From positions 806,001 to 870,000 of the forward strand of contig JBLDXI010000010.1 in the NCBI GenBank assembly GCA_047495785.1: a stretch of 64,000 nt of DNA, in the 5' to 3' direction. Source of the stretch: Lepidodermella squamata. Taxonomy: Eukaryota; Animalia; Gastrotricha. Made by a program: the position numbers and the translations under genes. Below the pieces are notes generated by a model, which did no database searches, had not been told where the DNA came from, and was given only the letters and a program-made list of their open reading frames with translations. Positions 15,247 through 49,240 of the stretch are shown in pieces (positions within the stretch are counted from its first letter, which is position 1; every line of letters starts with the position of its first letter).

Positions 15247-18132
15247 ATGCTAACCAGCATCTATCCGATTCTCATATTGTTAATTCAATGCATCTACTCC
15301 CAAAAACTTGCTTTCAGGAGCTCGATGCCGAGTCTGGTTTCACTATCGGCTAACTCGACGGCAGAGAGACGAATCCCACTGACCATTACAACATCAATAA
15401 ACTACAGCGGTGGACTAACGTTATCTCTGGGTCCACTTTGCACCGAATCAATGCGATACGCGCTGGAGAAAATTCGAAAATCGAATCAACTGCTGGAAAG
15501 CTATGATTTGAAGTTGACGCTATTCGATGATCAGGTAAGAACACTATTATTATATAGGTCAGTTTGACGTTTTAACTAACAATTAACATGAAACAAATTT
15601 TCTTGATATCGCCGAACACTCATATTAACTATCAACTATCAACTACAAAAAGTACACAAAATTAACCGCGGCCACTGAGCCCCTCCGTAACTGTCCTTCG
15701 CTAAAATTAGGCGGAACTTGATTGTTCCATAGGTTGTCGGATGAAATGTTACATGTCAAGCTAATCGGGAATCTCTATGAGCAGTCAATGAAATCTGTTT
15801 CGTTATTTATAATTCAATCAATCCTCAGCTACAAAAACTTTATTATGCCAGGCACTGACATACCGCGGAATCAGTTATGTTACAAGCAAGCTGCGAGAAC
15901 TGGAAAACAGCTACGATTCAACAGAAAACGTTATGCCGCTGGTATTGGGAAACAATGGAAAGCTGTACACTGGGCAATACTTGCAGTACTTCAACTTCTT
16001 CACGATCAACCACGGGCAAACAGTTCACGTTTCTCGAATTTTGCATATCGACAGAGACTCACTTCCATCTTCAATCCACTTGTTCATTCCCCACGAATAC
16101 GTTTATCCGTCAGTGGCAGAATTCATACTGAAGATGAATTGGCGAAAGTTGGCGATTCTATCGACCGATAACATCTATTGGAACCGGGTAATTAAATTCC
16201 AGAATTATTGCTATACAAAATTGCTCTAATTTCAGTGGGACTTGGCTTTGATCAAAGAAATGTTTGCAAGAAATATCACTATTCTTGGGAACGTTCGAAT
16301 AACGATAGCACTTGGCGCTACTAACCCATCTTCGATTGATATAGAAAATACAGTTCTTGAGTTGATCGCATTCAAGGAAGCTAGAGTCTTTGTGATTCAC
16401 GTGACTGTTGCCGTGGAAACATCTTGCTTTCTATACAAATACGGCCTGTACGGACCAGGGTACGTTTTCCTAATGCCGGCATTCGGCATTTTCAACGTTG
16501 ATTCACCAATACCATACGCATGGTGCACGAGTGAGATGATAGCAACGGTTCTTGAGAGCGTTCTCTTTTTCGGGCAAATGCCGCTTAGCGAAATTCGAGG
16601 CCCTGAAAATGTCAGAGCATCGGATGGAACGAGTGGTGCCGAGCTGGATGCCTATCTACGCAGTAGAATCGAAGCCCCGGAAAATATCCCATCGTGGTGG
16701 CTTCGTACCACTTGCTACGATATGATGCTGTTCGCTGCCTACGTGCTCAACGATACTGAATCTAAACTTCAACGACAAAACCAAACGTTAAGCGACTGGG
16801 CAGTTGGTGGCGCGAATTTTCGGAACAACGGGTCCCACCTATTTTCTTTGGTGAAAGACAGCATTTTCACCGTCGAGATGCAGGGCTTCATTAGTAAGCT
16901 AAAGTTCGACCTGGCAACTGGTTTCAACTGGGCTGGCAACTACTATCTGGCAATAACTCAGCTTCAAAGAATCAAAGGTGATGGAACATCGCAGACAGAT
17001 TCTTCGAGGATGGTTCCGATATTTGGCGCCTTAATGAATGCGAGCGATGGATCTGTAAAATTCGGTCCTGGTAAGCTCTCATGGAAAACATCTGACGGCC
17101 AGGCACCTCGCGATGGAATGCTAGTAGTTGAATCGAAGTGGGCTAATCCCGTCTTAACGTTTTCGCTTATAGCCGGTGAGTCATAATAGCATATATATTC
17201 ATAATGAATGACACTTTTATTCAGCTATTTCGGCATTGGTAATGCTCTTAGTTCTACTTTTATTGATTCTATCATCAATGGGCAAGTTGAGCTTTGCTGG
17301 CGGGTTCAATCAATGGAGCTATCGGCTGCTTCTTGTTGGGGATGTGTTTTTGGCGTGTCAGCCGTTGATAATGGGGCTTGAAAATGATAGCACCATTCAT
17401 GTTCGCTGCATGACATCCTATTTCTTCATAAACATGGGAATTTCCATAATTTTAGCGCAGCATGTGGCCAAGCTATGGTTTAACTACACATCTCTCAAAT
17501 CACCCGTTCAAAAACAAAAAAGGAAGTCTACAGTTACAGCTTCTCAAGCAATGTTAGCAAGAACTAGCGGATCACAACGCGCTCAGGAGGCGAAGATTCC
17601 CGCCAATGAAGCGGCTGGCTTTATTATTGCGTATGTGCTGTTGAACTGCGCGCTCTTCATGATTTGGTTAACGGCGGAACCGTTGGTTACCATGAAAAAT
17701 GTCGTTAGTTTTGAACTATCAAAGACTGACATAAGTTTGGCGTATAGCTTTTATGAATATGAATGCACGCTGGGAAACTTCCCCTTGGCGGGTGATTTCC
17801 AATACCACAACTTGATGCTGCTCTTCATCGGGATTCCGAACGCTATTCTGATGTTGACAGCATTAGCCCTGTCTTTATTGCTTGAAAATGTGAGTTCTTT
17901 CTATTCTTTGTCATTAAAGTGTAACTTTTTGGTTTCGTATTAGGCTGGAATTGCTCTATTGCGCCAATCGACCAACGCAACAATACTCATATTAGTAGCA
18001 TCATGCGCTATAGGGCTGATATTCTCAAATGATTGGAGAAGTCTTCAGACATTGGTGTCTTCTTCATGCTTGGCCATCGCATGCTGCAATTTGCTGACTC
18101 AATTCGTATTTGCTACGAAATCAAACTTCTGA
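15247..18132 (+). CDS. Class C GPCR, GABA-B-like (copy 3, intact); exons 15247-15534, 15852-16187, 16236-17175, 17225-17889, 17944-18132
   Basis: Same exon lengths as copy 1 (288/336/940/665/189), GT-AG junctions in frame, intron 1 expanded to 317 nt. Confidence 0.85.
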
Positions 18133-18831
18133 GAGTGTTCAAACGTACTAACTCCTATCTCGGGCAGAACGACTCGCCGAAAATAGAAAGAACAAATGGC
18201 GTAAAAAGATAGATCTGACACTATGTTTCTTTTATGTGCGCCGAAATGATGCTTCAAGAGTTTTGCTTTCTTGTCGGTCGGCCAATTTTTCACTTTTCAA
18301 GAGTTTTGTAAGAAGTACGGCCAAATCAACACATCTGACAAGTGATTCGGGGCTTCTATCAACCCAATTTCCCTCAACTGACCCGTCCTTTAATTTCGAC
18401 GGGAAAATTAGGGCATAGATGTCTTAATATATCTATGTCAAAATGTAAATATTTGCTAATTCCTTTGCATTTTTCCCTTTTAATATCGATGATTTTGCGC
18501 TATAAGGAGCCAATGAAAAAATTCCTATCCAGAGTACTACGCACTATACATAGTACTACGCACACATGTAGTAAGATATAGCCCATTGTATTCTGCGGGA
18601 AAAAAATATATGCACTGGACAAATAATGACCAACAAATATCTTCGATATTGCGGTCATTCTGAGGTATCTGCGCTGGGAATTCCGAGATAATCATGGCGG
18701 AAACGTTTCAGAAACTCATGGACTGAATCGTTCTTAGACAGCTCGAGTAAAACACAGTTCAAACTCTCAACAATAAGCTTGTTTTAATAATTTTGAAACG
18801 CTTTCAAGTAGTCATATCCTTTCAAGTAATG

Positions 18832-24136: not shown

Positions 24137-25304
24137 TATTTAGTGAAAACTGCCGAAATCACAAGCAGCAAATGCAATTGGAAAGGATTTTTCTTGGGTT
24201 TCTCGGATATTCCCGAGATTTTCATGTTAAAAGGCGATATCTTGCTCCAAAAATGAATAAACGCAATGAATTATATGGTTCAATTGATTGCCGAAGGTCA
24301 CCCTGGCATTATTGACGGGAACAATCCGATAAGGCCCGGCTAAGTAACGTGAAATACCGATAATTACCGATTTATTTCCAATCGGATTTCTGTCGGTTTC
24401 CCTCAGTAAATTTTCTTTTCTCGGTAACGTCTTGAGAATAGATACTGCAGGCTATGATGCACGTTAAGGTGGGAGGAAAAATAGTTATTTGAAATTCATA
24501 AATAAGACATTCCGCGGCTAGGCGCATGCCATTTTGCTTGCCTCGGTGTCAATCTTATCACGGCCATCTCGCTAACAAATGTTCACATTTTTCCGCCAGC
24601 TAAAAATTACACTTCAGAATTAAACAATCCGGAAAATTCGTGAATGGAGAGATGATAATGTGCCGCAGGCCTCGCAACCTTGTTTTTGGCAATTTTCAGA
24701 CCGGTCGTAAAATATTTCATAGCCGGTCAAAATATCAGAATATTCGTGAATTGGGGCCGCACGTATCGCTGATTTTGACGGTAGTCCCCCAAACCCCCAA
24801 TTTGTGACAGCATCCACTGCTGACTTTTAGCACTTTTTCAGTTTCCTCGTGAAATGAATTCTCACTATTCGATGAATTGAAAGGGAAATAAAATAAAAAC
24901 AAAGAAAAAAAACCAATAAGTTTCTTTTTTGTTTATCGATTTGATCAATGAAAGAATAAATTAACAGGGAATATGGCACTCATCAACAGAGGTAATCTGA
25001 AACATCAGTTCGCGGATAAAGGTGCATAACTTCTTAAGCGCTTCCTGGCTCTTGGTATCAATGTTGGTGATTTGTCCAAGTTGTTTTACGGCACTTTAAT
25101 GGGCATCAAAAATCGGTGCAATTAGCGGACAGTTGCGCGCCATAAACGCTCGTAAATATAACGGCTCCTAATTATGCAGCTATCGATTTTTCGCTCGCGC
25201 GCACCCACACAGCCATATGCGCGCTATCACTAATATATGAAATCCACTATGCCCGCGAATTCAAATATTGCGCGTCAAGAACGATATATGGATTATTATG
25301 CTAG

Positions 25305-27726
25305 TCACTAACATACCGCGGAATCAGTTATGTTACAAGCAAGCTGCGAGAGTTGGAAAACAGCTACAATTCAACAGACAACGTTATGCCGCTGATTTTA
25401 GGAAACAATGGAAGGCTTTACACAGGGCAATACCTTCAGTATTTCAACTTTCTCACTATCAACAATAATATGCACAACGTTCATGTTTCGCGCATATTAA
25501 ATATTAACAGAGATTCGATTCCATCTTCTTTCAACCTGTTCATCCCCCACGAATATGTTTACCCATCGGTGGCCGAATTCATATTGAAGATGAATTGGCG
25601 GAAGTTGGCGATTCTATCGACCGATAACATTTATTGGAACAGGGTAATTAAATTGGAAAACCACTGTTAGATAAATATGCAGTTCTACCTTTGATTTCAG
25701 TTGGATCTAGCTTTGATCAGGGAAATGTTTGCCAGAAACATCACCATTATTGGAAACGTACGAATAACGATACCACTTGGTGCCACTGTTCCTTCTTCGG
25801 TTGACATAGAAAATACTGTGCTTGAGTTGATAGCTTTCAGCGAAGCTAGGATTTTTGTGATCCATGTATCTGTTGCAGTTGAAACGTCCTGTTTTCTATT
25901 CAAATATGGTCTGTACGGACCAGGTTACGTTTTACTTATGCCGTCATTCGGCATTTTCAACGTAGACTCACCAATTCCATATTATTGGTGCACGAGTGAG
26001 ATGATAACAGCTGTTCTAGAGAGTGTCCTCTTTTTCGGACAAATGCCTCTCAGCGAAATTCGAGATGGAACGACCGGCAGCGAGCTGGATGCGTATCTGC
26101 GCAGTAGAATCGAAGCCCCTGAAAATATCCCATCGTGGTGGCTACGCACTACTTGCTACGATATGATGCTGTTCACGGCCTACGTGCTCAACGATACTGA
26201 ATCTAAACTTCAACAACAAAACCAAACGTTGAGCGACTGGGTAGTAGGTAGCGAGAATTTTCGGAAAAACGGGTCTTACTTATTCTCCCTGTTAAAAGAG
26301 AGCATTTTCACCATGACGTTGTTCGCAGCCTACGTGCTCAACGATACCGAGTCAAAGCTTCTCCGGCAAAACCAAACGTTGAACGACTGGGCAGCAAGAG
26401 GCGAAAATTTTCGAAAAAACGGGTCTTACTTATTCTCACTTGTAAAGGAGAGCATTTTCACCGTCGAGATGCAGGGCTTTATTAGTAAGCTAAAGTTTGA
26501 CCTGGCGACTGGCTTCAACTGGGCTGGCAACTACTACCTGGCTATAACTCAGCTCCAAAGAAGTAATGGAACATCGCAGGATGGTTCCGGTTTTCGGCGC
26601 GTTAATGAACGCGAGCGATGGCTCTGTGAAATTTGGTCCAGGTAAACTCCTCTGGAAAACATCTGATGGCCAGGCCCCACGCGATGGATTGCTAATTGTT
26701 GAGACCAAGTGGGATTATCCCGTCTTAACGTTTTCGCTTCTTGCCGGTGAGTCATAATAGCTGTCATTTATTGGCAAGGATTGAACATTATATTTAGCGA
26801 TTTCGGCACTGGGAATGCTTATTGTTCTACTCCTGTTGATTCTATCATCAATGGACAAGTTGAGCTTTGCTGGCGGCATGAATCAATGGAGCTATCGGCT
26901 GCTTCTAGTTGGGGATGTATTTTTGGCGTGTCAGCCGTTGATCATGGGGCTAGAAAATGATGGCGCGATTCATGTTCGCTGCATGGCATCCTATTACGTC
27001 TTAAACATCGGAATTTCCATAATTTTAGCGCAGCATGTGGCCAAGCTATGGTTTTACTACATATCGCTCAAATCACCTGTGCCAAAAAAGACAAAAAGAC
27101 AAAACATGACAAAACAAAAGAGGGAGGCTAGAGCCTCTCAAGCAATGTTAGCAGGGGCCAGCGGGTCAAGACGCTCTCAGCAGGAGAAGATTCCCGCCAA
27201 CAAAGCCGGTGTCTTTATTCTTGCGTTCGTGCTGTTGAACTGCGCGCTCTTCATGATTTGGTTAACGGTTGATCCTTTGATTACCATGAAAAATGTCGTT
27301 AGTTTTGAGCTATCAAAGACTGACATTAGTTTGGCGTATAGCTTTTATGAATATGAATGCATGCTGGGAAACTTCCCATTGGCGATTGATTTTCAGTATC
27401 ACAATATGATGATGCTCTTTATTGGAGTTCCGAACGCCATTCTGATGTTGACAGCATTAGCCCTGTCGTTAACGCTTCAAATGGTGAGTTCTTACTATTC
27501 TTTTTTATCAGAGTGTACCTTCATGACTTCGAATTAGCCTGGAGTTGCTCTATTGCGCCAATCGACCAACGGAACGATACTAATAATACTAGCCTCTTGC
27601 GCCATAGGGCTGATATTCTCAAATGATTGGAGAAGTCTTCAGACACTTGTGTCGTCTTCATGCTTGGCCATCGCTTGCTGCAATTTGCTGACTCAATTCA
27701 TATTTATCACGAAATTCAACTGCTAA
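25305..27726 (+). pseudogene. GABA-B-like GPCR copy 4, pseudogene (no exon 1 found, 24-nt deletion, 150-nt tandem duplication, frameshift)
   Basis: Exons 2-5 are recognisable. No exon 1 is seen in the TE-rich upstream DNA. GPENVRAS is deleted at ~26064, 26163-26312 is duplicated at 26313-26462, and a 14-nt deletion shifts frame at ~26580. Confidence 0.85.
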
Positions 27727-28343
27727 GAATGTACATTCGTTTTTCCTCCTATTTCACCAAGCATGCTTGTAACTCCGCACATAGATCCGAACATAACTGC
27801 ATTTGTTAAGCCGAACCATTTTTTCATTATATTATTCATATTCGACAGCTTAAAACCGCACCAAACTTCTCGGGAATACGTGTATATATTGTTTCGTAAA
27901 ATCATATTAGATACCAAATCCTTATAAATAGTCGTTTCGCGTTAAAAAGGAGCCGCTGTGTGCATAGCATGAAGCGTTTATCACTACTATACGTTCTCAG
28001 TGAAAACAGTTTCAAGGTGGAATTATAGAGGTATTCTTGGTCTCTTTTTACTAGTACTCTTTTTAAAATTCTTTCGTTTGGCGGCTGCTCTAATTCTCTG
28101 TATTGGGGAAAAGATGAACTAATATTTAATGGGATGCTAAATTAGGTTGAAGCGCACCTTACAATTCGTGCCCTGATCTGTAGAAAATGGAGACAACAAC
28201 ATCCTACAGACGAGGGTGCACCTAATATGCGCATGAGGTCAGACGGAGAAGGCTGAAACCTGAAACGACGGGTCTTAATCTTAACAACGATTCACCTCAA
28301 AGATTGTATCGGAATAATTTTTCTTTCATTAAAACGAAGGGCA

Positions 28344-30962
28344 ATGCTAATCCGCATGGATCTGATTTTTTTGATGCTTATCAAATGCGTTTCTCTCCAG
28401 AAACTAACTTTCAGGAGCCCAATGCCAAGTTCGATATCGCAATCAGCTAATTCGAACATATCGATAGACGTATCCAGCTAACTCTTACAACATCCATAAA
28501 CTATAGTGGTGGGCTAACGATATCTTTAGGGCCACTTTGCACCGAATCCTTGCGATTTGCGCTAATGAAAATTCGAAACTCAAATCAGCTGTTGAAAAAC
28601 TATGATTTGAAGTTGACCTTGTTCGATGATCAGGTAAGCGTCGCCTTGCTATGAATTTGTCTATGAATTGCTTATTTCTACTTTAAACAGTCGCAAACAT
28701 TTCCCGCAATCCGTTATGTAACATCCAAGTTACGCGAGCTGGAAACTGACAGCAATGTTACGGAGAACGTCATGCCGCTAATTTTGGGAAACAGCGGTAA
28801 GCTGTACACTGGGCAATACTTGCAGTACTTCAACTTCTTCACGATCAACCACGGGCAAACAGTTCACGTTTCTCGAATTTTACATATCAACAGAGACTCG
28901 CTTCCTTCTTCAATCCAATTGTTCGTCCCCCACGAATATGTTTACGCTTCGGTCGCAGAATTTATATCGAAGATGAATTGGCGAAAGTTGGCCATTCTGT
29001 CAACAGACAACATCTATTGGAACAGGGTAATCAAATTCGAAAATAGTTGCTATAAAATAATTATCGCTCTAATTTCAGTGGGACTTAGCTTTGATCAGAG
29101 AAATGTTTGCGCGGAACATCACAATTCTCGGGAACGTTCGAATAACGATACCACTAGGTGCCACCAACCCATCCTCGGTTGACATTGAAAATACAGTGCT
29201 TGAATTGATCGCATTCAAGGAAGCCAGGATTTTTGTGATTCACGTATCTGTTGCCGTCGAAACGTCGTGCTTTCTATACAAATATGGATTGTACGGACCA
29301 GGTTACGTTTTCTTAATTCCTGGCTTCGGAATTTTCAACGCAGATTCACCAATACCATACTTGTGGTGCACGGGTGAAATGATAGCAGCCGTTCTTGAGA
29401 GCGTTCTCTTTTTCGGGCAAATGCCCCTTAGTGAAATTCGAGGTCCAGAAAATGTCAGAGCTTCGGATGGAACGACCGGCAGCGAGCTGGATGCGTATCT
29501 ACGCAGTAGAATCGAAGCCCCGGAAAATATTCCAACTTGGTGGCTACGCACTACTTGCTACGATATGATGCTGTTCACGGCCTACGTGCTCAACGATACT
29601 GAATCTAAACTTCAACAACAAAACCAAACGTTGAGCGACTGGGTAGTAGGTAGCGAGAATTTTCGGAAAAACGGGTCTTACTTATTCTCCCTGTTAAAAG
29701 AGAGCATTTTCACCGTCGAAATGCAGGGTTTCATTAGTAAGCTAAAGTTCGACCTGGCTACTGGTTTCAATTGGGCTGGAAACTACTACCTGGCTATAAC
29801 TCAGCTTCAAAGAATCAAAGGTAATGGGACATCACAGACAAGGATGGTTCCAGTTTTCGGAGCGTTAATGAACGCGAGCGATGGCTCTGTGAAATTCGGT
29901 CCCGGTAAACTCTCATGGAAAACATCTGATGGCCAGGCCCCTCGTGACGAAATGTTGGTCCTAGAAATTAAGTGGGAATATCCTGTCTTAGTATTTTCGT
30001 TTCTTGCGGGTAAGTCGGGTCTTTAATGCCACTTTTTGCGCAATATTTAAATTTTTATCAGCTATTTCGACATTGCTAACGCTTATATCTCTATTTCTGT
30101 TGGTTCTATCATTAATGGATAAGTTGCGCTTCGCTGGTGGGATCAGTAAAATGAGCTATCGGCCGCTTCTTGTTGGAGACATCTTTTTAGCTTCCCAGCC
30201 CTTGATTATGGGCCTTCAAAATGATAGCGCGATTCATGTTCACTGCATGGCGTCCTACTGCTTCCTTATCATCGGAATCTCTATAACTTTGGCACAGCAT
30301 GTTGCCAAACTATGGTTCAATTACATATCGTTCAAGAAACCTGTGGCAACACAAAAGATGATAGCAAGAGCCTTTCAAGAGCAACCAGTAGTGACTAGCG
30401 AATCTCAAACAGGCCAGGAAGAACAAAGTCCCACCAAAGCAATGGGATTCTTCATCCTAATTTGCTTGCTTTTTAATTGTGCGCTCATGGTGATTTGGTT
30501 TGCTGTTGAACCCTTGATCACAGTGAAAAGCGTTGTTAGCTTCGAGCTATCAAAGACTGACATTAGTTTGGCGTATAGCTTCTATGACTATGAATGCACC
30601 ATGGGACATTTTTCTTTGGCGGATGATTTCCAATTCCACAACTTGATGTTGCTGTTCCTCGGAATTCCGAATTGTATTCTAATACTAACAGCGCTCGCTC
30701 TGTCTCTAATGCTTCAAAAGGTTAGTTCATTCCATGATTTGTCAGTGAGATAGGCTTCCTTGTTTTGAATTAGGCTGGAGTTGCTCTCTTACGTCAATCA
30801 ACCAATGGTACGATACTAATAATTGTAGCAGCGGGAGCCATAGGGCTGATATTTGCGAATAATGGAAGGAGTCTTCAGATACTGGTATCCGCCTCGTGCT
30901 TGGCTATCGTAGCCTGCAATTTGTTGACTCAATTCGTATATATTACGAAACTTAACTTCTAA
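28344..30962 (+). pseudogene. GABA-B-like GPCR copy 5; intact except for a 7-nt deletion in exon 1; exons 28344-28633, 28691-29026, 29079-30009, 30062-30720, 30774-30962
   Basis: Exon 1 is 290 nt: TCGATAGACG here versus TCGATGGCAGATAGACG in copy 2, giving an early TAA. Exons 2-5 are open and in frame. Confidence 0.8.
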
Positions 30963-31220
30963 AACTACAAGTACCTCACCACGCATATCGATTCGGCCAA
31001 AATTATTTCGAAGATATAAAATTGTGAGTGATAAATCGTATCTAGCATCGTAAAACCGCTAACTAAATTCTCTCATTCTCCCATTCTTGCCGATGTTTTT
31101 TCCTTGTGTCGAACCTGGAACTCAATGACAAAGAAATACAATTGTTCCTTTACTACACCGGATGTTTTTGTACAACGCTAACAGGATGGTAACAGTAAGA
31201 TTACAGTATTGAGCTTAATC

Positions 31221-34200
31221 TCATTCGGAAACATTAGGCAAAAGCAGTTTAATCTGCTGGGTTGGTTCCCGCTGCTGCGTAAAGTTATTCTGGAACTCTT
31301 GAACGAGCGGGTTGGCTAGCACATGGAAGTTGGGCCATCTGGTTGGCATCTCCTGCATGAGCGACCGGAAAATATTGTAGCCGCTTCGCAAGACAGCCAC
31401 CAAATTCTGCATTTTTGAATACCGAGTTTGACAAGCCTCCGCGCCACCCAACACGTGCTTCACAGCCATCTCGTAAGAATGCCGAACTAGAGGAATCTGA
31501 CCGATATGGGCGTGCGTCTCTTCATCTAGAAAAAGGCGAAAAATAGTATGAGAACTCTTTGAATTCTTATTAAAAATACAGCTTGGAACTTTCTTAAGAA
31601 AAAAATGTAGAAAAATTACCAGGGCTGAAGCATAGAAGAGCACAGAAGACTGCGAATTCCTGAAGGTTGGAAATAGTCTCCGCCACTTGGTTCCCAACAT
31701 AGCTCAGGTAGCTCTTGATCATGAATTCTTTCTCGCTGTCCGTCTGTGAAATCAGCATCGAAAAGCCGGTACACAGCCCTGAATCCCGATCAGCCGCCAA
31801 GTTGGAGGAAGGTTCGAAGTTTAACGAAATTTGAGCAGTGAGAACGGGAAAGAACGAGTTGAGGTATAACATCATACGTTCCTGCATGCTAATCGACTTC
31901 ACGCCGGGAAGAGAACTGAAAAATTCGCTAACAGCCTTCAAGTAAACGGCGAAAACGTCTGCTTTGATAGTCATAGATTCGTCAACAGTCATCTCTGGAG
32001 TTACTGCGACTTTGACCTGCGTAACCGACATTATTAAACAAAATCAATGACGAAATCGCTCGAAAAATTGTAGTATGAACTACGAACTGCGATTGAAAAC
32101 TACCTGGGATATCGGGGTCAATTTCACTGCGGCCGCCACGCATTGTTGAACCAGCCTCTCTGCAAATGAATTTTTAGGTTGCGAAGTCGTTGTTTGTTGG
32201 CTGCTTTCTGCCGCACTCAAGCATGGAATTTGAGAGGTCGCCCCAGCATCATTACTCTGTCTCCTCTCCTCGACCCTCAACTCTCCTCCAGGAAATGCAG
32301 AGGATGAGGTAGATGGCGCATCGGTTGAGAGCACGTGGTAATCGAACGCAGGTGAAGCGTCTTTAGAAGCCTTGGGAGCGCTGGCGGCGACTGTGACTGG
32401 TAGAGCTCCTCCCCGATTCAAAAATGTTTCATCGTTGCGGTTAGCACTCGATTGAAAAAACGAAAGGTCCGCCAGTGAGCGGTCTTTTTTAGATAGCCGC
32501 TTCTGTTTAGCGGAAGAACCAGGTCGAGAAGTTTCACCATGTTCAGTTGAGCCAACAGAAGAATTTCTGGTATTAGATCGAGTGAGTTTTGCGTGTTCAC
32601 GGCGCTGTTGATGTGGCTTCTTATTGAAGAACCTTCTCGAGCATCGCAGAGAGTCGTTACGTTCCAGGCTGTGTGATTCATCGGGGGAGCTCGGCTCAGC
32701 ATTGAGCGCGCTTGTAGTTACCACGGTTGATTGAGCAGGTAAGGCTGATTTGCGTGGGTAAGAGCCAGGGACTTCACTTTCAGGAGAACTCGGTTCGCTC
32801 ACTGGGAGGCTGGCCTTCTGACGAGTCCTGTGCAGCGCCTCCCTGGAACAACATTGGTTTGTATTAAGGCTTATATTAAGAACAATATCTCTGATTTTCT
32901 ATAATTGGGCACTGCAGCAACTTGGCCAAAGATAGAAAATTTGGTCGCGTAGAATTTTGTACGGTTGAAATCAAGATAGGCATGGAAATTTGGATAAATA
33001 GAGCGTGTCCGATAAACGCTAAACGCACTGCTCGGCTGTTCGGATGTAAACTTTGTAAATATTATATTACCTACTGTCCCAAAAGTATCGTTAAAAATAG
33101 GACTAGACTACAAAAAGTGTGAGAGGCGAAGTAATATCTCACGGCAAGAAAAAATCTTAGTAATAAAAAATCGAAATTGCTGTAATAGTGATCGAGTATG
33201 TCTCTTGTGAGTAGGACTGAACCAGGTAAAAACCGAAAAATACCGAACCAGTTACCATCAGGGTTTTCAGGGTTTCCTCCTGTAAATTTCTTCCGAAAAA
33301 TCGTGGATAAAGGATGGAAGATTCCCCCAGTGGGCCTAATTTAAAAAAAATAGGCTAATAAATTCCCAGTTGTTTTAACTTCTAATTGCTGCGGAAATCA
33401 TGGGAGTTGGGATTAATTAGCGAAAGCATTTGAATCGAGGTCGAATGGCGTCATTAGTTGCACGGCCACGTTGCGCCTTTCTTAAAAATGCTAATAAGGT
33501 GTCCAAAATGTACAAATCTATCCATAATTTCAACAATTTTCATGAAATCAAAGTAAAATGGAAAAATCACGGGTAATTGAATTCATCGAATTCCTATTCA
33601 ATATTCAATTTTTACAATTCTTCCAGATTTCCTAGAACTGCCCAAGAAACGGTTTAGTCCAAGGATAAATTTTAATAGCCTACATGATTTTTCGGCGTTG
33701 CTGCTCTGCTTCAAAGTCGTCCGATGAGTCATCAACAAAGTCATCGAAATCATCATCGATATCGTCTTCAAAGGTTTCATAGTCTGTATTGCGACTGTAG
33801 TTCTGTTGCGACCTCATACTGCTTGATGATTCGCTTATCCCCTGGTCTCGCTTTCCCTTCGAATAGCGGTTGCGTGGGCAGCGTTCACCAAACATGCCTG
33901 CATCATAGCAGCGGCGGAAGCGGCAACTCCGGCATTCAGTTCTAGGACTGCACGGAGATTTTGGTGCGAAATCGGCTTGTGGGTCAAGATTTCGAGGTCT
34001 TTGTAAGCAATGCAGATCGTTTGGATGCTTCTGCCTCGTGCGAGCGAAGAAATATCCGCAGTCTTCACACGCGACGACCCCATAGTAAAAGCCATCACCT
34101 GGGAAAAGAAATAGATGATAAGGCATGTTTGACCACCCGCTCAATTATGTGAAACCTAATGGTTATCTTAGAGTGTCCCAAAACCACGCAATTCCATTGT

Positions 34201-34744
34201 TACAATGGCTATTAATAATGCTATCAGCCCTATCCAATAAGTTTGGAATGTAATCTCCCTTACTGGGCGCACTGCAAACTGCGCAAGGAATTCTGGCGAA
34301 ATCATCGTCGATCGAGCTTCCCGTCCTCGAAACGATGGAGCTTCCAGGCTTTGTTATTCCCCTGCTATCCAACTTTGGCTGTCGCTTCGCTTGTGGTGAC
34401 TGGCGCGATGTTGACGAGGAAGAGGCTTCGTCTTTACTTGTCCTAGCTAATAGTTTAGCCTTTCGAATTTGATCCATAACGCTTAAACCCATTTTGTATC
34501 TGCAAGGTCGGCATTTCACTATTTCAGACGCCGCTTTATGCTTCGATTTCGGCTCTGAGCAAACGCAATCCCAATCCTCGGGTATGCCCTCTGTCTGACA
34601 GCGATACTGAAATTTGCGACAGGCCTCGCAAATAGAGATTTTTGGAAATAATATCGATTCCTGTCTCCTATGCGACGACGAGCGTCGGAAAAGGCTCGGT
34701 ATCGAACGTCGACAGACGCCGCAGTAAAATTTACAATCTGCCAT
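31221..34744 (-). CDS. Nuclear receptor with two tandem C4 zinc-finger DBDs and an LBD (2DBD-NR-like, ~778 aa); exons 34744-34264, 34098-33684, 32842-32104, 32016-31620, 31525-31221
   Basis: Four GT-AG introns give one open frame of 2337 nt. DBD1: CGVC..CEACRKF..CVC..CRPCRY. DBD2: CAVCSAPSDGFYYGVVACEDCGYFFAR..CRSCRFRRCYDAGM. LBD signature FFSSLPGVKSISMQERMML, helix EFAVFCALLCFSP, AF-2-like PLVQEF. Confidence 0.85.
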
Positions 34745-35658
34745 GTCTTGAATAATTAAGGATGCTAAAACAAGAAGATTATCTGTGTATAAATAATTTT
34801 TTACAGTTAAACGTTACTTCAGGACGGATGGGAAGTAAGGGGAAGGGGGAACGGTCCAGTCAGTTAAATTTACTAGTTTGATGGCTGTTATCCAGTGCAA
34901 AACGAAAGCGAGGGTTTTATTAAACACTTCTCCGTGTGTTATTGACCCTGATAACACCGAGTTGCTTGTCTTTTGAAATGGTGCGATGACAGACGAACGG
35001 AAGAATAGTTGCGTACGTCTTATTTTAATGCTCGGTGTCTCGCATTGGGGACAAAGCTAGACGTAATAAAATTTTCATGCTCTTTGAATAGGTATCATAG
35101 TTACGAAAAGCACAGCTCATCATATTATATCATTAGCAACGCGATACTACTCGTCTAAGTTTACATATGTGCGCTGTTAACTATACCGCCAGTACTTATT
35201 CTTGTGGATGCCAAAATACGCTGCGGCGCACTATTCCAGTTATGAATACAATAAGTGTGCTCACCTATGTGTGTACTGCCAAGCAACAGTTGTCAACTTC
35301 TTGTTAACCTTAACATTTGAAAATGAAGTTCAGCGAAGCTTTTGAGTATTCTGTAACAGACGATTGTCTATGGCCAATGAATATCGGGTTCTTTCGAGGA
35401 AAATTTGAAATTATGAACTGACGCAAAAGACTATCGTTGCTAGCCTTATACTAACCTTACCTTGCTAGCCATTAGCCATGCGATTAACTAATACGTTATA
35501 AATAGGCTTTCAGCACTGATTTTTTCGAGACAGCGAGGCTCTGTTTCTTCAAATCCCTGAGTTTGCTTTCACTGAATTTATTTAGCGGCCGTCAAATTGT
35601 TACGGGTTACCAGACCCATTTATGGTAAAGTCTTTTACTGAAATTTCCTTTTCATAGC

Positions 35659-36063
35659 TCAGGCGAGTTGAACAACCATCTTCGCAACCGCCAGCGCCAA
35701 AAATGAAGCGCAGATTTGGGCTGAACTGACTACCGTTGTTGATGCGCCTGAGTAGATGATTTTGTTGAGAGCAGCTCTAACCCCAGCGTCCACAAGCCGG
35801 CTCACAACGTTGACTTGCGTCGTCGTAGATGTTGAATTTGAGGGAGATATTATCTCGTTCAATTTTCCATTCGCCTGATCCAACTTGCTCTGGACGATGT
35901 TAGCCCCAGTGTAGACAACGTTGCTAGTTGCGTTAGAGACAGAGCTGAGAATTGAGTTCCCAGAGGATATTAGAATGCTTAGAATTGATACAGTGGTTGT
36001 TTCAGCCTTTATCTCATTAACGGCGATAATTGCGACTAAAAATATAGTGAACTTGAAAAACAT
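35659..36063 (-). CDS. Small Ser/Thr-rich secreted or GPI-anchored protein (134 aa), unknown function
   Basis: Signal peptide MFFKFTIFLVAIIAVNEIKA, N-glycosylation sequons (NAT, NST), hydrophobic C-terminus ICASFLALAVAKMVVQLA. Confidence 0.6.
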   Translation of the reverse strand: MFFKFTIFLVAIIAVNEIKAETTTVSILSILISSGNSILSSVSNATSNVVYTGANIVQSKLDQANGKLNEIISPSNSTSTTTQVNVVSRLVDAGVRAALNKIIYSGASTTVVSSAQICASFLALAVAKMVVQLA

Positions 36064-37325
36064 TTTAGATGTTGCTATGTGGGAAAGTTTGAAAGTGTAA
36101 AATTTCAAGAGGCATTATGGGGTTAGCGATGTAACCTCCTACTCCCAACCGACTCCACTCACCCACCGCTTTCTGCCCGCAATATGCAACTTCATTGTGG
36201 CAGGACAATTACTCGTTAGTAACGCGAGTAAACCATTGTTATCCTGAGCACGCGCTAAACTGGCACAGAGCCTGAAAACATGAGTCGTGGAACAAATATA
36301 CTCTATCCCGTCTTAAACTTTCTATGATTCATAGCGCAAAATCGTTATGACGGACTGGGCTTTGAAAGGTGTGGATTTTCCGCCTGCGAAATTCATCCCT
36401 ACAGAATCCTGTTTTCTAAGTTGAATAAGACTGATATGAATCAGTAGCTACTAAAGCTGAATGTTTGTTGTATGGATCTCGATGTAGATGTGAAGGTTTT
36501 CCCAGAAAAAGATATCGAAGATTTCAAAGATTCTATCGATGATAAAAAATTCCCGAAGATTTTGCATTAAGCATGCTTATTTGAAGAAGCTTGCAGAATA
36601 AAAAGTGATCAATCATGTTTCAATTCAGGTTCGAAAGCTTTTCCAATCCCTATCATGTATTTAGGTTATCATCAGCATTTTCTTTTCAGTTCCCATGATA
36701 TAAGCTAAGGTGCTGAGAGCTTGGAAAACTGCTCGGTCGATTATTGAGCGAGATCTTCGAGAGTTTCGAGAACAGCCTGTAAATTTCTAGCGTGATCGCA
36801 TGGCTGAAGTTTTGTCTTTCACAATTGACATCACTGCCATCCCTATTCGGAAATGGATATCAGTGGACATTGAGCGCTTCACATAATGCAAGCCTACGAG
36901 CCGACAACGGAAGCTGTTTTAGACGCGTTAAAGCTCTGGAAGAAATTCGATAGGAATTATCCGGCGAATTAAAATGCTTCTTGTAGGATAAAGACTCACG
37001 TAATTTGAGTGGTCGACGAAGCACTTTCTTAATTTCCTGAGCTAACCCCCCTAGCGTTTCGTAGGCCTAAAGTCGAGTTATGGAGCCATTTAAGGTTTCA
37101 GATTTCTTTGCGACAAGATGAAACATTTGAAGGGATTATTACAGTATGAGATTTTCGCCCCCGACAGTGGCGAAACTGTCTTCAAAATTAAAACTATTGA
37201 GACAAGAGACAGAAACTTCCGTCAAGCTTCGTGGAGGTGTAATCACAAAGAGCACGTCGAAAACGTTTACAGGATCATTGTGCTTTTTATCTCCTGATTA
37301 TTTTGTTTCACAAACACCCAAGGCA

Positions 37326-39984
37326 ATGTTCTTGTATCTGATCCTTCTAATGCTCATCCAAAGCATTTCTCCTCAAAAACTCGCATTCAGAAGCCCGATG
37401 CCAAGCTCGATAGTTCAATCAGCTGAATCAAACAGATCGATGGCTGAGAGACGAATTCCTTTAACTTTAACAACATCAATCAACTACAGCGGCGGAGTAA
37501 CGACAGCCCTAGGGCCGCTTTGCACGGAATCCATGCGATTTGCACTGGAAAAAATTCGAAGTTCAAATCGGCTGCTGAAAAACTATAACTTGAAGTTGAC
37601 GCTGTTTGACGATCAGGTAAAAGAGGCACAGCTTAGATGAAATGCTTATTTAAATCTCCTTTTCTTCAGTTGCAAACATTTCCAGCAATTCGTTATGTAA
37701 CGAGCAAATTGCGGGAACTAGAAACTGACAGCAATGCTACAGAGAACGTCATGCCGCTAGTATTGGGAAACAATGGAAAGCTGTACACTGGGCAATACCT
37801 GCAGCACTTCAACTTCTTCACGATCAACCACGGGCAAACAGTACACGTTTCTCGAATTTTGCATATCAACAGAGACTCGCTTCCATCTTCGATCCACTTG
37901 TTCATTCCTCACGAATACGTTTACCCATCGGTTGCAGAATTTATACTGAAGATGAATTGGCGAAAGTTGGCCATTCTATCGACTGATAACATCTATTGGA
38001 ACAGGGTAATTGAAATTCGAAAATTATTCGCTAAAATACTTAGTCATCATTCTAATTTCAGTGGGATCTGGCTTTGATCAGAGAGATGTTTGCGAGAAAC
38101 ATCACCATTCTTGCTAACGTTCGAATAACGATAGCCCTTGGAGCCACTATTCCATCTTCGAATGATATAGAAAATACAGTTCTTGAGTTGATCGCATTCA
38201 AAGAAGCAAGAATCTTTGTGATTCATGTGTCTGTTGCCGTTGAAACGTCCTGTTTTCTATACAAATACGGCCTGTACGGACCAGGGTACGTTTTCCTAAT
38301 GTCGGCATTAGGAATATTTAATATAGATTCACCAATACCGTATTCGTGGTGCACGAGTGAGATGATAGCGGCTGTTCTTGAGAGCGTTCTGTTTTTCGGG
38401 CAAATGCCGCTTAGCGAAATTCGAGGCCCTGAAAATGTCAGAGCTTCGGATGGAACGAGTGGTGTCGAGCTGGATGCGTATCTACGAAGTAGAATCGAAG
38501 CCCCGGAAAATATCCCGTCCTGGTGGCTACGCACTACTTGCTACGATATGCTGTTGTTCACGGCCTATGTCCTCAACGATACTGAGTCAAAGCTTCAACG
38601 GCAAAACCAATCTTTGAGCGATTGGGCAGTCGGCGGGGAGAATTTTCAAAGCAATGGGTCTTACTTATTCTCCCTGGTGAAGGAGAGCATTTTCACCGTC
38701 GAGATGCAGGGCTTTATTAGTAAGCTGAAGTTTGACCTGGCGACTGGCTTCAACTGGGCTGGCAACTACTACTTGGCTATAACTCAGCTCCAAAGAAGTA
38801 ATGGAACATCGCAGACAAATTCTTCCAGGATGGTTCCAGTATTCGGCGCGTTGATGAATGCGAGCGATGGCTCTGTGAAATTCGGTCCTGGTAAACTCCT
38901 CTGGAAAACATCTGACGGCCAGGCCCCTCGCGACGAAATGCTGCTAGTAGACGTCAAGTGGGAATATCCCGTCTTGGCTTTTTCATTCCTTGCTGGTGAG
39001 TTACCTTCCTAATGCCAATTAACGTACTAATCAGGTAATCTTTCAGCAATTTCGACATTGCTGCTGGTTGCAGCTCTGCTTCTCTTGGTCCTATCGCTTC
39101 TTGGCAAAATACGATTTGCTGGTGAAATCCATCAGTGGGACTATCGGCTGCTTCTTGGTGGGGACATATTTCTGGCTTCCCAGCCGTTGATTATGGGGCT
39201 TCAAAATGATAGCGCAGTTCATGTTCGTTGCATGGCGTCTTACTACTTTCTCATCATTGGAGTTGCCATAATTTTGGCACAACATGCTGCGAAGCTCTGG
39301 TCCAACTACGTATCGTTCAAGAAACCTGTGACGATTCAAAGTTTGAATTCGAGAGCTGTATCATCATTCAAGTCGCCTGTCGCAAGATCGAAAAGGAAGG
39401 CGAGAGCAGCTGTGGCTACCGAATTGCTATCTGTACATGTTGAGAAGACCCCGAACAAAACAATGGGGGTCTTCATTCTTGCGTATGCTTTCTCGAATTT
39501 CGCGCTCATGTTGATTTGGTATACAGTTGAACCCCTGATTACTGCTAAACACATTGTTAGCTTCGAACTGTCGAAGAGTGACATCAGTTTAGCCTACAGC
39601 TTTTATGATTATGAATGCACGCTGGGAAATTTCCCCTTGGCGGGTAATTTCCAATACCACAACTTGATGTTGCTCTTCATTGGAATTCCGAACATTTTAC
39701 TTATGCTGACAGCATTAGCTCTATCCCTTATGCTTCAGAATGTGAGTTCTTTACATTGTTTGTTATTGAAATATAGCTTTCTGATTTCCAATTAGTCTGG
39801 AGCTTCCCTCTTGCGCCAATCAACTAATCGAACGATAATAATCATTATCGCAGCATTCGCCATAGGGCTGATATTTGCGAATAATGGAAGGAGTCTACAG
39901 ATACTCGTATCCGCATCCTGCTTGGGTGTTGCAGCCTGCAATTTGTTGACTCAGTTCGCATATAATACGAAACTTCACTTCTAA
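37326..39984 (+). CDS. Class C GPCR, GABA-B-like (copy 6, intact); exons 37326-37616, 37670-38005, 38062-38995, 39047-39741, 39796-39984
   Basis: In-frame GT-AG junctions, same architecture as copy 1. Confidence 0.85.
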
Positions 39985-40739
39985 AACTGCACGCAGCTTC
40001 ATCCGGTTAAAATTAACATTAAGAATTCATGATAAATAATATATTAATAGAAATTAATGAATCGTTGAGGTAGTTTCTTAGAAATGAGAGAATACAACGG
40101 TTTCTCATAGACCCTGGGCTTATTTTTTGCCGTTTTATTATTTATTGAACCAGTTCGAGCCAGAAACGAGGGAATTTCACGGAATCCATAGTGGTAGTTT
40201 CTCGATATTCTCAACATTGAGCTGGACGGCTGTTCGACTTTTGCAATTGTCAGGGAGGAGCTGTGTGTATTATCGCCATTGAGGCTGCTCGATTTTCACG
40301 AAATCTGATGCGAATGCTACTGGATTTGTCGAAATAGGGGCCGCTGCTCGATCCTCGAGCTGTACAAGTTTGCCACGAGCGCAATTGATTTTGAATTATA
40401 AAGCTGCCTATGCGACCTATTCGTTAGCCTCCAAGTGTCGAAAGTGAGGACTCGGAATGATCGAAGAAACGGTGCCTTCTAAAGTTCCAAGTAAGAAATA
40501 TCCCAAATAAATGACCAGGAATTGGGAAAGCTCGAATTATCGATCAAATGATCGGCTTGCGCCGGCGTTTTACCGATAAACAATAGTTTAACGTGATCGT
40601 AGAGACCGCCTTAATTGAGTCGTATAGTTCGTACAGTTCTTCGTGGCCGCGCCAGACGTAAGAGATACTACGACAAGATTTGTTTACAAGGAGCCAGTCA
40701 CGTTTCTTTACAATTTGAAATAATGCAGAATTCAGAAAA

Positions 40740-41399: not shown

Positions 41400-41834
41400 T
41401 CAGACCGGAAACCTCTGATCAAGCCCTACATTTCGATCCTTGGAGCGAGCTTGGACGATGTTTTCGGATTATCTCGGATTATCGGATGGGGTTTCATTAC
41501 ATCCGAACTCGGATGCAGCACTGGACTCAATTTTTGGAGCGCCTCAGACCGAAATGCGAATATAAGCTCATATACCCTTCATGTCTTCCGTAAATTATAT
41601 TATAGAAAAAATAGAAGTTACCGTTTGCAATTATTTGAATTCGAAAATATTTATTTTCCATAACAAAGGCGAAAGGTGAAGAAACTATAAGTACGGAAAA
41701 GCGACCTTCTCTTGCAGCTGACGCAAGTAAGGTGTCGAAAAAGGAGTTCTGTCAGTTGCATAGCAGGTGTTGCATCGAAGAAAGTCGAAATTAGAGAAAT
41801 AAAACACTAGATGGAACTAAAAGGCAAGATTTGC

Positions 41835-42644
41835 TTATGCAGAGGCGGCGGTGGTGGACCTCTCGTTGCAACGAGCCTTGGGGGCAGCAGAGCCAGAGCC
41901 AGATTGCTGCTGCTGGCGAGACTTGGGGGCAGCGGAGCCAGAACCAGATTGCTGCTGCTGGCGAGACTTGGGGGCAGCGGAGCCAGAACCAGATTGCTGA
42001 CGGGCAGCGGCGGCCTTCTGGGTGGTGGACCTCTTGTTGCAACGAGCCTTTGCAGGGGCAGCAGATCCCGAACCAGATTGCTGATGCTGGCGAGACTTGG
42101 GGGCAGCGGAGCCAGAACCAGATTGCTGCTGCTGGCGAGACTTGGGTGCAGCGGAGCCAGAACCAGATTGCTGACGGGCAGCGGCGGCCTTCTGGGTGGT
42201 GGACCTCTTGTTGCAACGAGCCTTTGCAGGGGCAGCAGATCCCGAACCAGATTGCTGTTGCTGGCGAGACTTGGGGGTAGCGGAGCCAGAACCAGACTGC
42301 TGACGGGCAGCGGCGGCCTTCTGGGTGGTGGACCTCTTGTTGCAACGAGTTTTGGGGGCAGCAGATCCAGAACCAGACTGCTGCTGCTGACGAGACTGGG
42401 CAACTCCCGAACCAGACTGTTGCTGACGGGCTTCCGCTTCTTCTTCAGATTCCTCTTCCTCGGATGATTCCTCGGAGTCGGAGTGCTCAGCAGAGTGCTC
42501 ATGGGATTGAGATCCATGGGGAGGAGGAGGAGGGCCGTGGGGGTTGCGGGCAACGGGGCCAGAGCCAGAGGCCGCAGGAGGACCCTGAGGGGCGGCCAAG
42601 ACGGCGGCAAAGAGAGCAGCGACCAAAGCAATGCGGACGAACAT
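41835..42644 (-). CDS. Secreted low-complexity repeat protein (RQQQQSGSGSAAPKS and RCNKRSTTQKAAAA repeats), single exon
   Basis: Signal peptide MFVRIALVAALFAAVLA, upstream TATA box, and in-frame repeat units. The alternative frames lack a comparable start. Confidence 0.75.
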   Translation of the reverse strand: MFVRIALVAALFAAVLAAPQGPPAASGSGPVARNPHGPPPPPHGSQSHEHSAEHSDSEESSEEEESEEEAEARQQQSGSGVAQSRQQQQSGSGSAAPKTRCNKRSTTQKAAAARQQSGSGSATPKSRQQQQSGSGSAAPAKARCNKRSTTQKAAAARQQSGSGSAAPKSRQQQQSGSGSAAPKSRQHQQSGSGSAAPAKARCNKRSTTQKAAAARQQSGSGSAAPKSRQQQQSGSGSAAPKSRQQQQSGSGSAAPKARCNERSTTAASA

Positions 42645-46097: not shown

Positions 46098-49000
46098 ATG
46101 GCAACCCGCTTGTATCTAATACTTATAACGCTTATCCAATGCATTTCTACCCAGAAAGTCGCATTCAGAAGCCCGATGCCAAGTTTGATAATGCAGTCAG
46201 CTGATTCAAACAGATCGATAAGGATTGAAGGACGAATGCCTCTTACCCTTACTACGTCGATCAACTACAGCGGTGGAGTAACGGTATCCCTGGGTCCACT
46301 TTGCACGGAATCAATGCGATTTGCGTTGCAGAATATTCAAAAGTCGAATCTACTGCTGAAAAACTATGATTTGAGGTTGAACATTTTCGATGATCAGGTA
46401 AGAGTACTCGCCTATGAGAAATGTGCCTTAATATTCCTAATTACGAGTACTGAACCAGACCAGAGCTCTTAAAGTAGGACCGGGATAGATTTATCACCGG
46501 GATCTATAACCTCGGGCACCGCATTAACTACATAGACATGTTAGGCTTAGTGGATAATTGATTCTTGAACATTTTTACTGCAAATAATTTGAAAAATTCT
46601 GTGTCCTAAACGGACTCGTTGAAAGGCGAACAATTTCACAAATACTTTTTCTATGGGGATAATTTCTGGAAATTAAGGGCTTTTCCTGGTGAAAAACAAT
46701 TAGGTAAACAAGAGAACATAATCAGTCCATTGTGCTTGAGCTAAATAGCTAATCGCTGAACCATTTGTGGTTATTTCCTCAGTCGCTAACATACCGTGCT
46801 ATCCAATATATAACGAACAAACTACGTGAACAAGAAACTGACAGCAACGCCACATATAACGTCATGCCGCTAGTATTGGGAAACAATGGAAAGCTTTATA
46901 CTGGGCAATACCTACAGTACTTCAACTTCTTTACGATCAACCACGGGCAAACAGTTCACGTGTCCCGAATTTTGCATATCGACAGAGACTCGCTTCCTTC
47001 TTCGATTCACTTGTTCGTTCCCCACGAATATGTCTACCCGTCGGTTGCAGAATTTATACTGAAGATGAATTGGCGAAAGTTGGCGATTCTATCGACCGAT
47101 AACATCTATTGGAACAGGGTAATCGAATTAGAAAATCGTTTTCCCTTCAATTTTTCTTTTAATTTAGTGGGATTTGGCTTTGATCAAAGAAATGTTTACG
47201 AGGAACATCACCATTATTGGAAACGTTCGGATAACTATAGCACTGGGGGCCACGAACCCAACTTTCACTGATATCGAAAATACAGTACTTGAATTATTGG
47301 CTTTCAAAGAAGCCAGGATCTTTGTGATTCACGTATCTGTTGCCGTCGAAACGTCCTGTTTTCTATATAAATTTGGCCTTTACGGACCAGGTTACGTTTT
47401 CCTATTGCCGGCCTTGGGAATTTTCAACGTAGAATCCCCAATACCATACCCATGGTGCACGACTGCCATGATAGCAGCGGTTTTAGAGAGTGTCCTCTTT
47501 TTCGGGCAAATGCCTCTCAGTGAAATTCGAGGCCCAGAAAATGTGAGAGCTTCGGACGGGACAACCGGCAGTGAACTGGATGCGTATCTGCGCAGTAGAA
47601 TCGAATCCCCAGAAAATATCCCATCCTGGTGGCTACGTACGACATGCTACGATATGATGTTGTTCACGGCTTACGTGCTCAACGATACTGAATCTAAACT
47701 TCAACGGCAAAACCAAACGTTGAGTGACTGGACAGTAGGCGGGGAGAATTTTCGGAAAAACGGGTCTTACTTATTCTCCCTGGTAAAGGAGAGCATTTTC
47801 AACGTTGAGATGCAGGGCTTTATTAGTAAGCTAAAGTTCGATCCGGCGACTGGTTTCAACTGGGCTGGCAACTACTATCTGGCAATTACTCAACTTCAAA
47901 GAATTAAAGGTAATGGAACATCGCAGGCCAATTCGTCCTGGATGGTTCCCGTCTTCGGAGCATTAATGAACGCGAGCGATGGCTCTGTGAAATTTGGTCC
48001 CGGTAAACTTCTCTGGAATACACCTGATGGCCAGGCCCCTCGTGACGGAATGCTGGTAGTGAAAACCAAAAGGGAATACCCTGTCTTAGCTTTTTCGTTC
48101 CTTGGAGGTAAGTTTCCTTGCCTATTTAACGGCAATTTCTGTACTATTTGTAACTTCTTTAAGCAATTTCGGGAATGCTGCTGCTTTCAGCTCTAATTCT
48201 TTTGGCTCTGTCCTTTATGGGCAAGGTACGCTTTGCTGGTGAAATCGATCAGTGGGGCTATCGGTTGCTTCTTTTCGGAGATTTACTTTTGGCGAGTCAG
48301 CCGTTGATCATGGGACTCCAAAATGATGATGCAGTTCATGTTCGTTGCATGGTGTCTTACTACGTCCTAATTATCGGAGTTTCTATAATCTTGGCTCAGC
48401 ATGTTGCAAAACTCAGGTTCAGCTTCGTATCGTTTAAGAAACCTGTAACGATGCAAAGTTTGTATTCAAGAGCTGTGTCATTCAAGTCTCCTGTTCCAAG
48501 AAAAAGGGCAAAGGCGAAATCCTTTCAAATACTACCAAACGTTACTGCTGAATCACAACCCGGACTGCATGAGAAAATTGCACACAAACCAATGGGTGTC
48601 TGCATCCTTGCATCTGTGCTTATGAATTGTGCACTCACGTTGATTTGGTTCACGGTTGAACCTCTGATCACTGTGAAAAGCGTTATTAGCTTCGAGCTAT
48701 CAAAAACTGACATCAGTTTAGCATACAGCTTCTATGATTATGAATGCACGCTGGGAAATTATCCTTTGGTTGGTGATTTCCAATATCACAACTTGATGTT
48801 GCTCTTCATCGGAATTCCGAACATTATTCTAATGCTAACAGCGTTAGCTCTATCGCTAATGCTTCACAAGGTCAGTTCTTTCGACTACCGTCCTTAAATA
48901 TAGTTTCTTATTTTGGAATTAGACTGGAACTGCCCTCTTGCGCCAATCAACTAATCGAACAATAATTATCATCATAGCAGCATGTGCCATAGGGCTTATA

Positions 49001-49111
49001 TTTTCGAATAATGGAAGGAGCCTCCAGATACTGGTATCCGCCTCGTGCTTGGCCATAGCATCCTGTAATTTGCTTACTCAATTCGCATTTATTACAAAAT
49101 CTAACTTATAA
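46098..49111 (+). CDS. Class C GPCR, GABA-B-like (copy 7, intact); exons 46098-46397, 46783-47118, 47168-48107, 48164-48870, 48923-49111
   Basis: In-frame GT-AG junctions; intron 1 expanded to 385 nt. Confidence 0.85.
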
Positions 49112-49240
49112 GAATAGTCGTGAAACCTGATTTACCTATGATCTATATAATGTCTCAGAATTGTTTGCAACTTCATTTTGACCTGAAAACATTTCGACAA
49201 AGGTGCACTCATTTTGACGACTTTTTCGACGAGCCATATA

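Follow-up and report, generated by a model that had tools for sequence, protein, structure and literature searches.

A probable nuclear receptor of the two-DNA-binding-domain class, strongly diverged, encoded within a receptor gene array of the gastrotrich Lepidodermella squamata

Among the genes in a 64,000-nucleotide (nt) stretch of the Lepidodermella squamata genome (assembly GCA_047495785.1, contig JBLDXI010000010.1, positions 806,001 to 870,000, hereafter the window), one gene at positions 31,221 to 34,744 raises the question of whether a protein whose zinc modules depart so far from the usual plan is still a nuclear receptor (NR), and if so, of which kind. The original prediction, which was made from the letters alone, proposed either a highly derived NR bearing a pair of DNA-binding domains (2DBD-NR) or an independent duplication of the DNA-binding domain (DBD) of an ordinary receptor. 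We have found that the gene is probably intact and transcribed, and that it probably encodes a 778-amino-acid (aa) receptor that goes back to the two-DBD class (NR7 of the group A type) and has been altered very strongly within this lineage.

The gene lies on the minus strand and was shown, by reading through the sequence and by a script check, to consist of five exons separated by GT..AG introns of consistent phase (1/2/0/1). The donors are, in order, GTAAGG, GTAGGC, GTAGTT and GTAATT, and at the acceptors a pyrimidine-rich sequence leads up to the final AG. The joined coding sequence measures 2337 nt or 778 codons (exon coordinates are given in Table 1). The frame stays open for 153 codons before the first Cys of the second DBD (DBD2), for which the probability by chance is about 9e-5, and since one uninterrupted exon carries both the first DBD (DBD1) and DBD2's first two Cys, a complete DBD2 requires exon 1. 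As had been predicted, no A/B region is seen: counted from the first ATG, the first Cys is already aa 8. The start of the gene is bordered by a strong site that resembles an acceptor (CTTGTTTTAG, 34745-34768) and could either receive a spliced leader or close a 5' intron; since its AG stands 20 nt before the start ATG, a further coding exon may lie upstream. An open reading frame (ORF) of 149 aa located upstream of the gene was considered as an A/B exon and rejected, being a separate small protein of the secreted type. No intron positions with which this gene could be compared were found in the published papers. Intron 2 contains a very high-copy repeat, over which the summed contig depth of the DNA run X2 was ~8,000-32,000 vs ~90 on the flanks and at which many loose contig ends continue into other sequence; a terminal inverted repeat was looked for in this intron and none was found.

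Evidence for expression comes from run X1, which is presumed to be RNA. In this run coverage extends over exons 1 to 5, with contigs over 34275-34655 of exon 1, and drops to ~0 over introns 1 and 2, save for the repeat in intron 2. The X1 joints are all of the "opposite strand" kind and were interpreted as concatenated mates. Joint distances within exons were 100, 104, 104, 110 and 143 nt, while those of joints spanning intron 4 were 200 and 194 nt and those of joints spanning intron 2 were 949 and 950 nt. Subtracting the intron lengths of 94 and 841 nt brings these down to 106, 100, 108 and 109 nt, and because the distances shrink to a uniform 100-110 nt it appears that introns 2 and 4 are spliced out. 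The spacing of the pairs, which is taken from joint distances and not from direct junction reads, fits spliced RNA; no X1 pairs were shown across intron 1 or intron 3.

Run X2 carries a second haplotype, which offers a view of selection on the gene. Among the differences listed for exons 3-5, 12 were synonymous and 12 non-synonymous, where 23% synonymous would be expected, giving a rough omega of ~0.3 (binomial p 0.004). The ratio of synonymous to non-synonymous changes among those listed was 4:1 in exon 4 and 8:9 in the hinge, and both of the listed indels fall within introns. One contig of X2 connects positions 31430 and 34033 and leaves out 2602 nt; that it might stem from an allele of the intact gene with a deletion was considered and rejected, the contig's layout being that of the pseudogene copy found elsewhere in the window (Table 1). 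Overall, the gene is probably intact and expressed.

Of the two zinc modules, DBD2 is the more readily recognized. In searches, family scans and fold predictions, all of which were run exon by exon, the part of DBD2 located on exon 2 was by itself sufficient to score 37.2 bits against Pfam zf-C4 (E 4e-9; cut-off 21.1 bits). It also aligned with the DBDs of ER, Rev-erb, ERR and RAR in the PDB with E values of 4e-6 to 2e-5, the alignments to ER (1HCQ), Rev-erb (1A6Y) and RAR (1DSZ) extending over the whole domain. Judged by its sequence, DBD2 is a genuine NR zinc domain of the zf-C4 family. The first finger is canonical, whereas the second reads C-x18-C-x5-C-x2-C vs the canonical C-x5-C-x9-C-x2-C and is 9 residues longer than in the PDB receptors. 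In the structure of the ER DBD bound to its estrogen response element, two lysines of the recognition helix contact bases jointly with a Glu and an Arg. DBD2, with its P-box CEDCGY, retains the Glu and the Arg, but unlike in ER, Rev-erb and RAR the two lysines are replaced by Gly and Ala. The loss of the P-box Lys had been foreseen; in addition, the other Lys that contacts bases has gone (FFKR to FFAR).

DBD1 has drifted much further. Eight cysteines are found in the canonical order (C8-x2-C11-x27-C39-x2-C42-x17-C60-x1-C62-x15-C78-x2-C81), with a first-finger loop of 27 residues vs the canonical 13, made up of a low-complexity Arg/Ser insertion, and with a second finger of the form C-x1-C-x15-C-x2-C. 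The P-box is CEACRK and belongs to a recognition helix motif CEACRKFxxR; an aromatic residue stands two positions before Cys5, and a distal helix motif, CRPCRYKMGLSV, takes the place of CxxCR(F)xKCLxVGM in receptors. As far as can be judged from these motifs, of the four positions with which receptors usually read bases DBD1 keeps three (the Glu, the Lys in the form of an Arg, and the Arg). The two modules are collinear over Cys3, 4, 5, 7 and 8 with 25% identity (BLASTP E 0.12 as a single comparison), and their local score had a p of 0.012 and a z of 3.0 against 5000 composition-preserving shuffles. The closest language-model feature clusters of aa 1-105 were all zf-C4 (score 0.86), which was taken as a lead only.

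The remaining architecture agrees well with what was originally read from the spliced frames. Along with the enlarged first-finger loop and the P-boxes CEACRK and CEDCGY, the linker given as ~60 aa was found to measure 66 aa (14 Ser and 13 Lys/Arg), the acidic patch was located at aa 264-298 (16 D/E in 35 aa), and the ~250-aa Ser-rich hinge corresponds to the 246 aa of exon 3, 17% of which are Ser and in which no recognised domain was found in Pfam. The predicted ligand-binding domain (LBD) with its LVQEF held only in part: the LVQEF core, resembling the activation function 2 (AF-2) helix, is present at aa 751-755, but exons 4 and 5, scanned singly, fall short of the Hormone_recep cut-off, as described below.

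In order to place the gene, it was compared by eye with the published 2DBD-NR alignment and P-box table (PMC10497141). In NR7A, which includes 2DBD-NR alpha, beta and gamma of Schistosoma mansoni and the 2DBD-NRA of molluscs, annelids and rotifers (PMC10497141), the first DBDs have EACKK with FF(I/L/M)R after it (Wu & LoVerde 2023, PMC10497141), and the second DBDs start with CxVCxAPSSG(F/I)HFG, where NR7B and ordinary receptors have GDxxSG (PMC10497141). Like these proteins, the gastrotrich receptor appears to place two zinc modules ahead of a single LBD, and it has a first P-box (EACRK) that is one conservative change away from EACKK and is followed by F..R, a DBD2 that starts with CAVCSAPS-DGFYYG across the exon 1-2 junction, and an AF-2 core of the form hydrophobic-hydrophobic-x-E-hydrophobic. 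The sequence following the first P-box is FQYR, with a non-basic residue where first DBDs have I/L/M. On the strength of these motifs DBD1 may well be homologous to the first DBDs of NR7A. Since each module bears the NR7A signature of its own position, a derived 2DBD-NR is preferred over an independent duplication, from which such position-matched signatures would not be expected.

Nonetheless, most of the formal descriptors of NR7A are absent. Published 2DBD-NRs have 17-22 aa between the DBDs, both of which are spaced C-x2-C-x13-C-x2-C and C-x5-C-x9-C-x2-C, and NR7A members are further described by a P-P module EACKK-EGCKG and by a G-box RxGRQ(P/S) five residues past the second DBD (PMC10497141). 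Here the linker is 66 aa, DBD1 has x27/x1/x15 in place of x13/x5/x9, the second finger of DBD2 has x18/x5, and the P-P module is EACRK-EDCGY, the second box of which shares two of five residues with EGCKG. The G-box is degenerate, with PRNRYS following GM and five further residues and agreement at the Arg and Ser positions alone; likewise, there is no visible A/B region, and the LBD signature is poorly preserved. Because spacing, linker, P-P module and G-box all differ, the gene is to be seen as a derived variant and not as an NR7A member, so that the first option of the original prediction is favoured by the position signatures but not in the sense of formal group membership. Highly variable P-P modules are also known from the nematode 2DBD-NRC and from other divergent 2DBD members (PMC10497141); all of these, however, were reported to have largely canonical zinc-finger spacing, and there is no sign of kinship with the nematode group here. 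Losses of the P-box Lys have been reported in some 2DBD members, as in TACWM of a first DBD and LGCTK of the second DBD of Of2DBD (PMC10497141, S1 File), and with these precedents the loss is not unprecedented in the class.

A number of results weigh against the reading of the gene as a two-DBD receptor, and most of them concern DBD1. Pfam gave no zf-C4 match for DBD1, whether for the whole domain or for a sub-part without the inserted loop, and no receptor was matched by exon 1 in the PDB sequence search, in which a toxin at E 1 was rejected as a chance match. The single-sequence AlphaFold model of DBD1 reached a pLDDT (predicted local distance difference test) of 50 and had no fold match in Foldseek beyond noise. 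Two word searches and a full phmmer search with exon 1 over 1.84 billion proteins found no relatives of DBD1; one phmmer match to a 2604-aa tandem-repeat translation was rejected, as it was made up of 15 weak stretches summing spuriously. The language-model atlas score of 0.86 lies within the range that shuffled sequences often attain, and the shuffle p of 0.012 for the collinearity of the modules is modest. In addition, no X1 read spanning the exon 1-exon 2 junction was seen, and the nature of X1 as RNA is itself a guess. As for the LBD, exon 4 alone scores 15-16 bits against Hormone_recep (E 0.008-0.013, profile positions 19-143 of 213), which is under the cut-off of 23.5 bits, and the strict LBD signature agrees at only 3-5 of its 9 positions. 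Thus, in the profile hidden Markov model (HMM) check that had been proposed, DBD2 passed, exon 4 of the LBD remained sub-threshold and DBD1 had no match, and the proposal that DBD1 is an NR zinc finger stands at the level of motifs while no HMM or fold tool scores it. The secondary structure predicted for exon 4 is all helical at low confidence, with a single-sequence AlphaFold pLDDT of 43 that makes the model unusable, and exon 5 alone had no family match and no usable atlas match; the LBD would therefore be called weakly recognisable. Word-index searches with exons 1, 2 and 4 and two metagenome scans found no relatives either. The libraries that were searched do not hold the gene's own product, so that these blanks say little about absence; what they show is strong divergence from everything public, and not uniqueness within the animal's own genome.

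It could be argued from the lack of HMM, PDB and fold support for DBD1 that the protein is in fact a single-DBD receptor acting via DBD2 alone, with a Cys-rich stretch at its N-terminus that does not function as a DBD, be it the worn remnant of a first DBD that has ceased to fold around zinc or an extension of other origin. The non-canonical length of all three DBD1 loops and the low-complexity Arg/Ser insertion in the first finger also point in this direction. However, the eight canonical Cys have been kept in order while the remainder drifted, the CEACRKFxxR and the distal CxxCR(Y)K..L.V motifs were retained, DBD1 is collinear with DBD2 (p 0.012), and the frame was kept open over 153 codons, and we consider this explanation unlikely. 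Less likely still is an independent event in this lineage, with no relation to NR7, by which an ordinary single-DBD receptor had its DBD duplicated. The failure of most NR7A descriptors (linker, spacing, P-P module and G-box) is in line with such an event, but at 25% identity the modules are no closer to each other than to distant receptors, and each carries the NR7A signature of its own position. It is similarly improbable that the gene has been recently inactivated or is drifting, with an open frame but no selected protein function. Its extreme divergence and lack of relatives, the fact that its only paralogue is a pseudogene, and the 8 synonymous vs 9 non-synonymous changes in the hinge might all be read in this way, yet the 778-codon frame and the splice sites of all five exons are intact, synonymous changes are in excess overall and 4:1 in exon 4, indels are confined to introns, and the exon-only coverage of X1 points to expression. 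On balance, the descent of the gene from a two-DBD receptor remains the explanation that we regard as probable.

The gene is placed between two of eight tandem class-C-like receptor copies, which are 74-88% identical in a self-comparison of the window and have weak 7tm_3 and ANF_receptor matches in Pfam. It was previously suggested that its co-duplication with these receptors might reflect a regulatory link. A segmental duplicate of the receptor-plus-NR unit does exist, the region 12342-14700 matching 28057-34423, but both the receptor and the NR gene in it are without most of their coding sequence. All that is left of the NR gene there is the linker's end, the first part of DBD2 and 71 aa at the end of the LBD; DBD1 is missing, and the fragment contains a TGA in frame and a duplicated stretch of 7 nt. 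The NR partner was duplicated with only one of the eight receptor copies, and the other six copies have no NR partner. Furthermore, RGGTCA half-sites are not enriched in the window (41 observed vs 42.5 expected), a count that says little given the odd P-boxes. Since the co-duplicated NR copy is a gutted pseudogene without DBD1, a regulatory link to the receptor array is unsupported, and nothing supports a functional tie of the NR gene to the neighbouring membrane-receptor genes. Elsewhere in the window, no family match was found for the 149-aa ORF, and the region 41791-42644, with long ORFs overlapping on both strands and an internal direct repeat (41850-42308 vs 42021-42431, 83%), had no Pfam match and probably represents coding sequence that is repetitive or of low complexity.

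Table 1. Features of the NR gene and of the surrounding window (positions are those of the window)
Feature	Position	Strand	Description
Exon 1	34264-34744	-	aa 1-160 plus 1 nt; ATG 34742-34744, DBD1, linker and CAVCSAPS (first two Cys of DBD2)
DBD1	34475-34723	-	aa 8-90, within exon 1
Inter-DBD linker	34286-34483	-	66 aa (aa 88-153)
Intron 1	34099-34263	-	165 nt, phase 1; interrupts first finger of DBD2
Exon 2	33684-34098	-	Remaining DBD2 (33893-34098), C-terminal extension, acidic patch (33686-33790)
Intron 2	32843-33683	-	841 nt, phase 2; very high-copy repeat at ~33132-33385
Exon 3	32104-32842	-	246-aa Ser/Thr-rich hinge
Exon 4	31620-32016	-	N-terminal two thirds of LBD
Intron 4	31526-31619	-	94 nt, phase 1
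Exon 5	31221-31525	-	C-terminal part of LBD; LVQEF 31293-31307, stop 31221-31223
NR pseudogene fragment	13945-14700	-	tblastn, blastn, sequence inspection
Cathepsin propeptide (I29) exon	2170-2916	-	Pfam
827-aa ORF with Laminin_G_3 domain	3696-6179	-	Pfam
Class-C-like receptor copy	6886-9520	+	One of eight tandem copies
Class-C-like receptor copy	12342-13557	+	One of eight; internal deletion of ~1.7 kb
Class-C-like receptor copy	15855-18161	+	One of eight tandem copies
Class-C-like receptor copy	25300-27730	+	One of eight tandem copies
Class-C-like receptor copy	28343-30962	+	One of eight; converges on NR gene, 467 nt between stop codons
Class-C-like receptor copy	37331-39992	+	One of eight tandem copies
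Class-C-like receptor copy	46780-49115	+	One of eight tandem copies
Class-C-like receptor copy	51039-53664	+	One of eight tandem copies
149-aa ORF	35659-36108	-	Signal-peptide-like start, Ser/Thr/Val-rich body; between NR gene and next receptor copy
RING-variant protein	57231-57941	+	Pfam
Long ankyrin-repeat protein	60137-61963	+	Pfam

Most likely, the protein would be a transcription factor of the orphan type whose two zinc modules are tethered to each other. Of these, DBD1 would have been remodelled, yet with more base-reading positions preserved than in DBD2, to which it is joined by a long, flexible Ser/Lys-rich tether, while DBD2 would be a zf-C4 module without both base-contacting lysines and with a dimerisation (D-box) loop enlarged to 18 residues. 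The acidic patch and the long disordered hinge may serve as an activation or autoinhibitory segment, and the divergent LBD with its AF-2-type helix would recruit cofactors. Binding of zinc and DNA by either module, an altered target specificity and a working LBD are all plausible on this scheme, and since both modules are so altered the DNA target cannot be predicted. It is also conceivable, although we think it rather unlikely, that the division of labour is inverted, with DBD1 reading the sequence through the Glu, Arg and Arg of its helix and DBD2, its two reading lysines gone and its D-box loop grown to 18 residues, serving on the 66-residue tether as a clamp without sequence preference or as a surface for protein contacts; if so, the DNA target would be unlike any known hormone response element.

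Two-DBD receptors are poorly understood as regards the joint reading of DNA by their two modules, and the published members are very uniform. A natural member that is apparently under selection, and whose spacing, P-boxes, D-boxes and length of tether have all changed, would indicate the extent to which the superfamily's most conserved domain can drift, and the gene may offer a natural test of which features are required for the binding of zinc and DNA.

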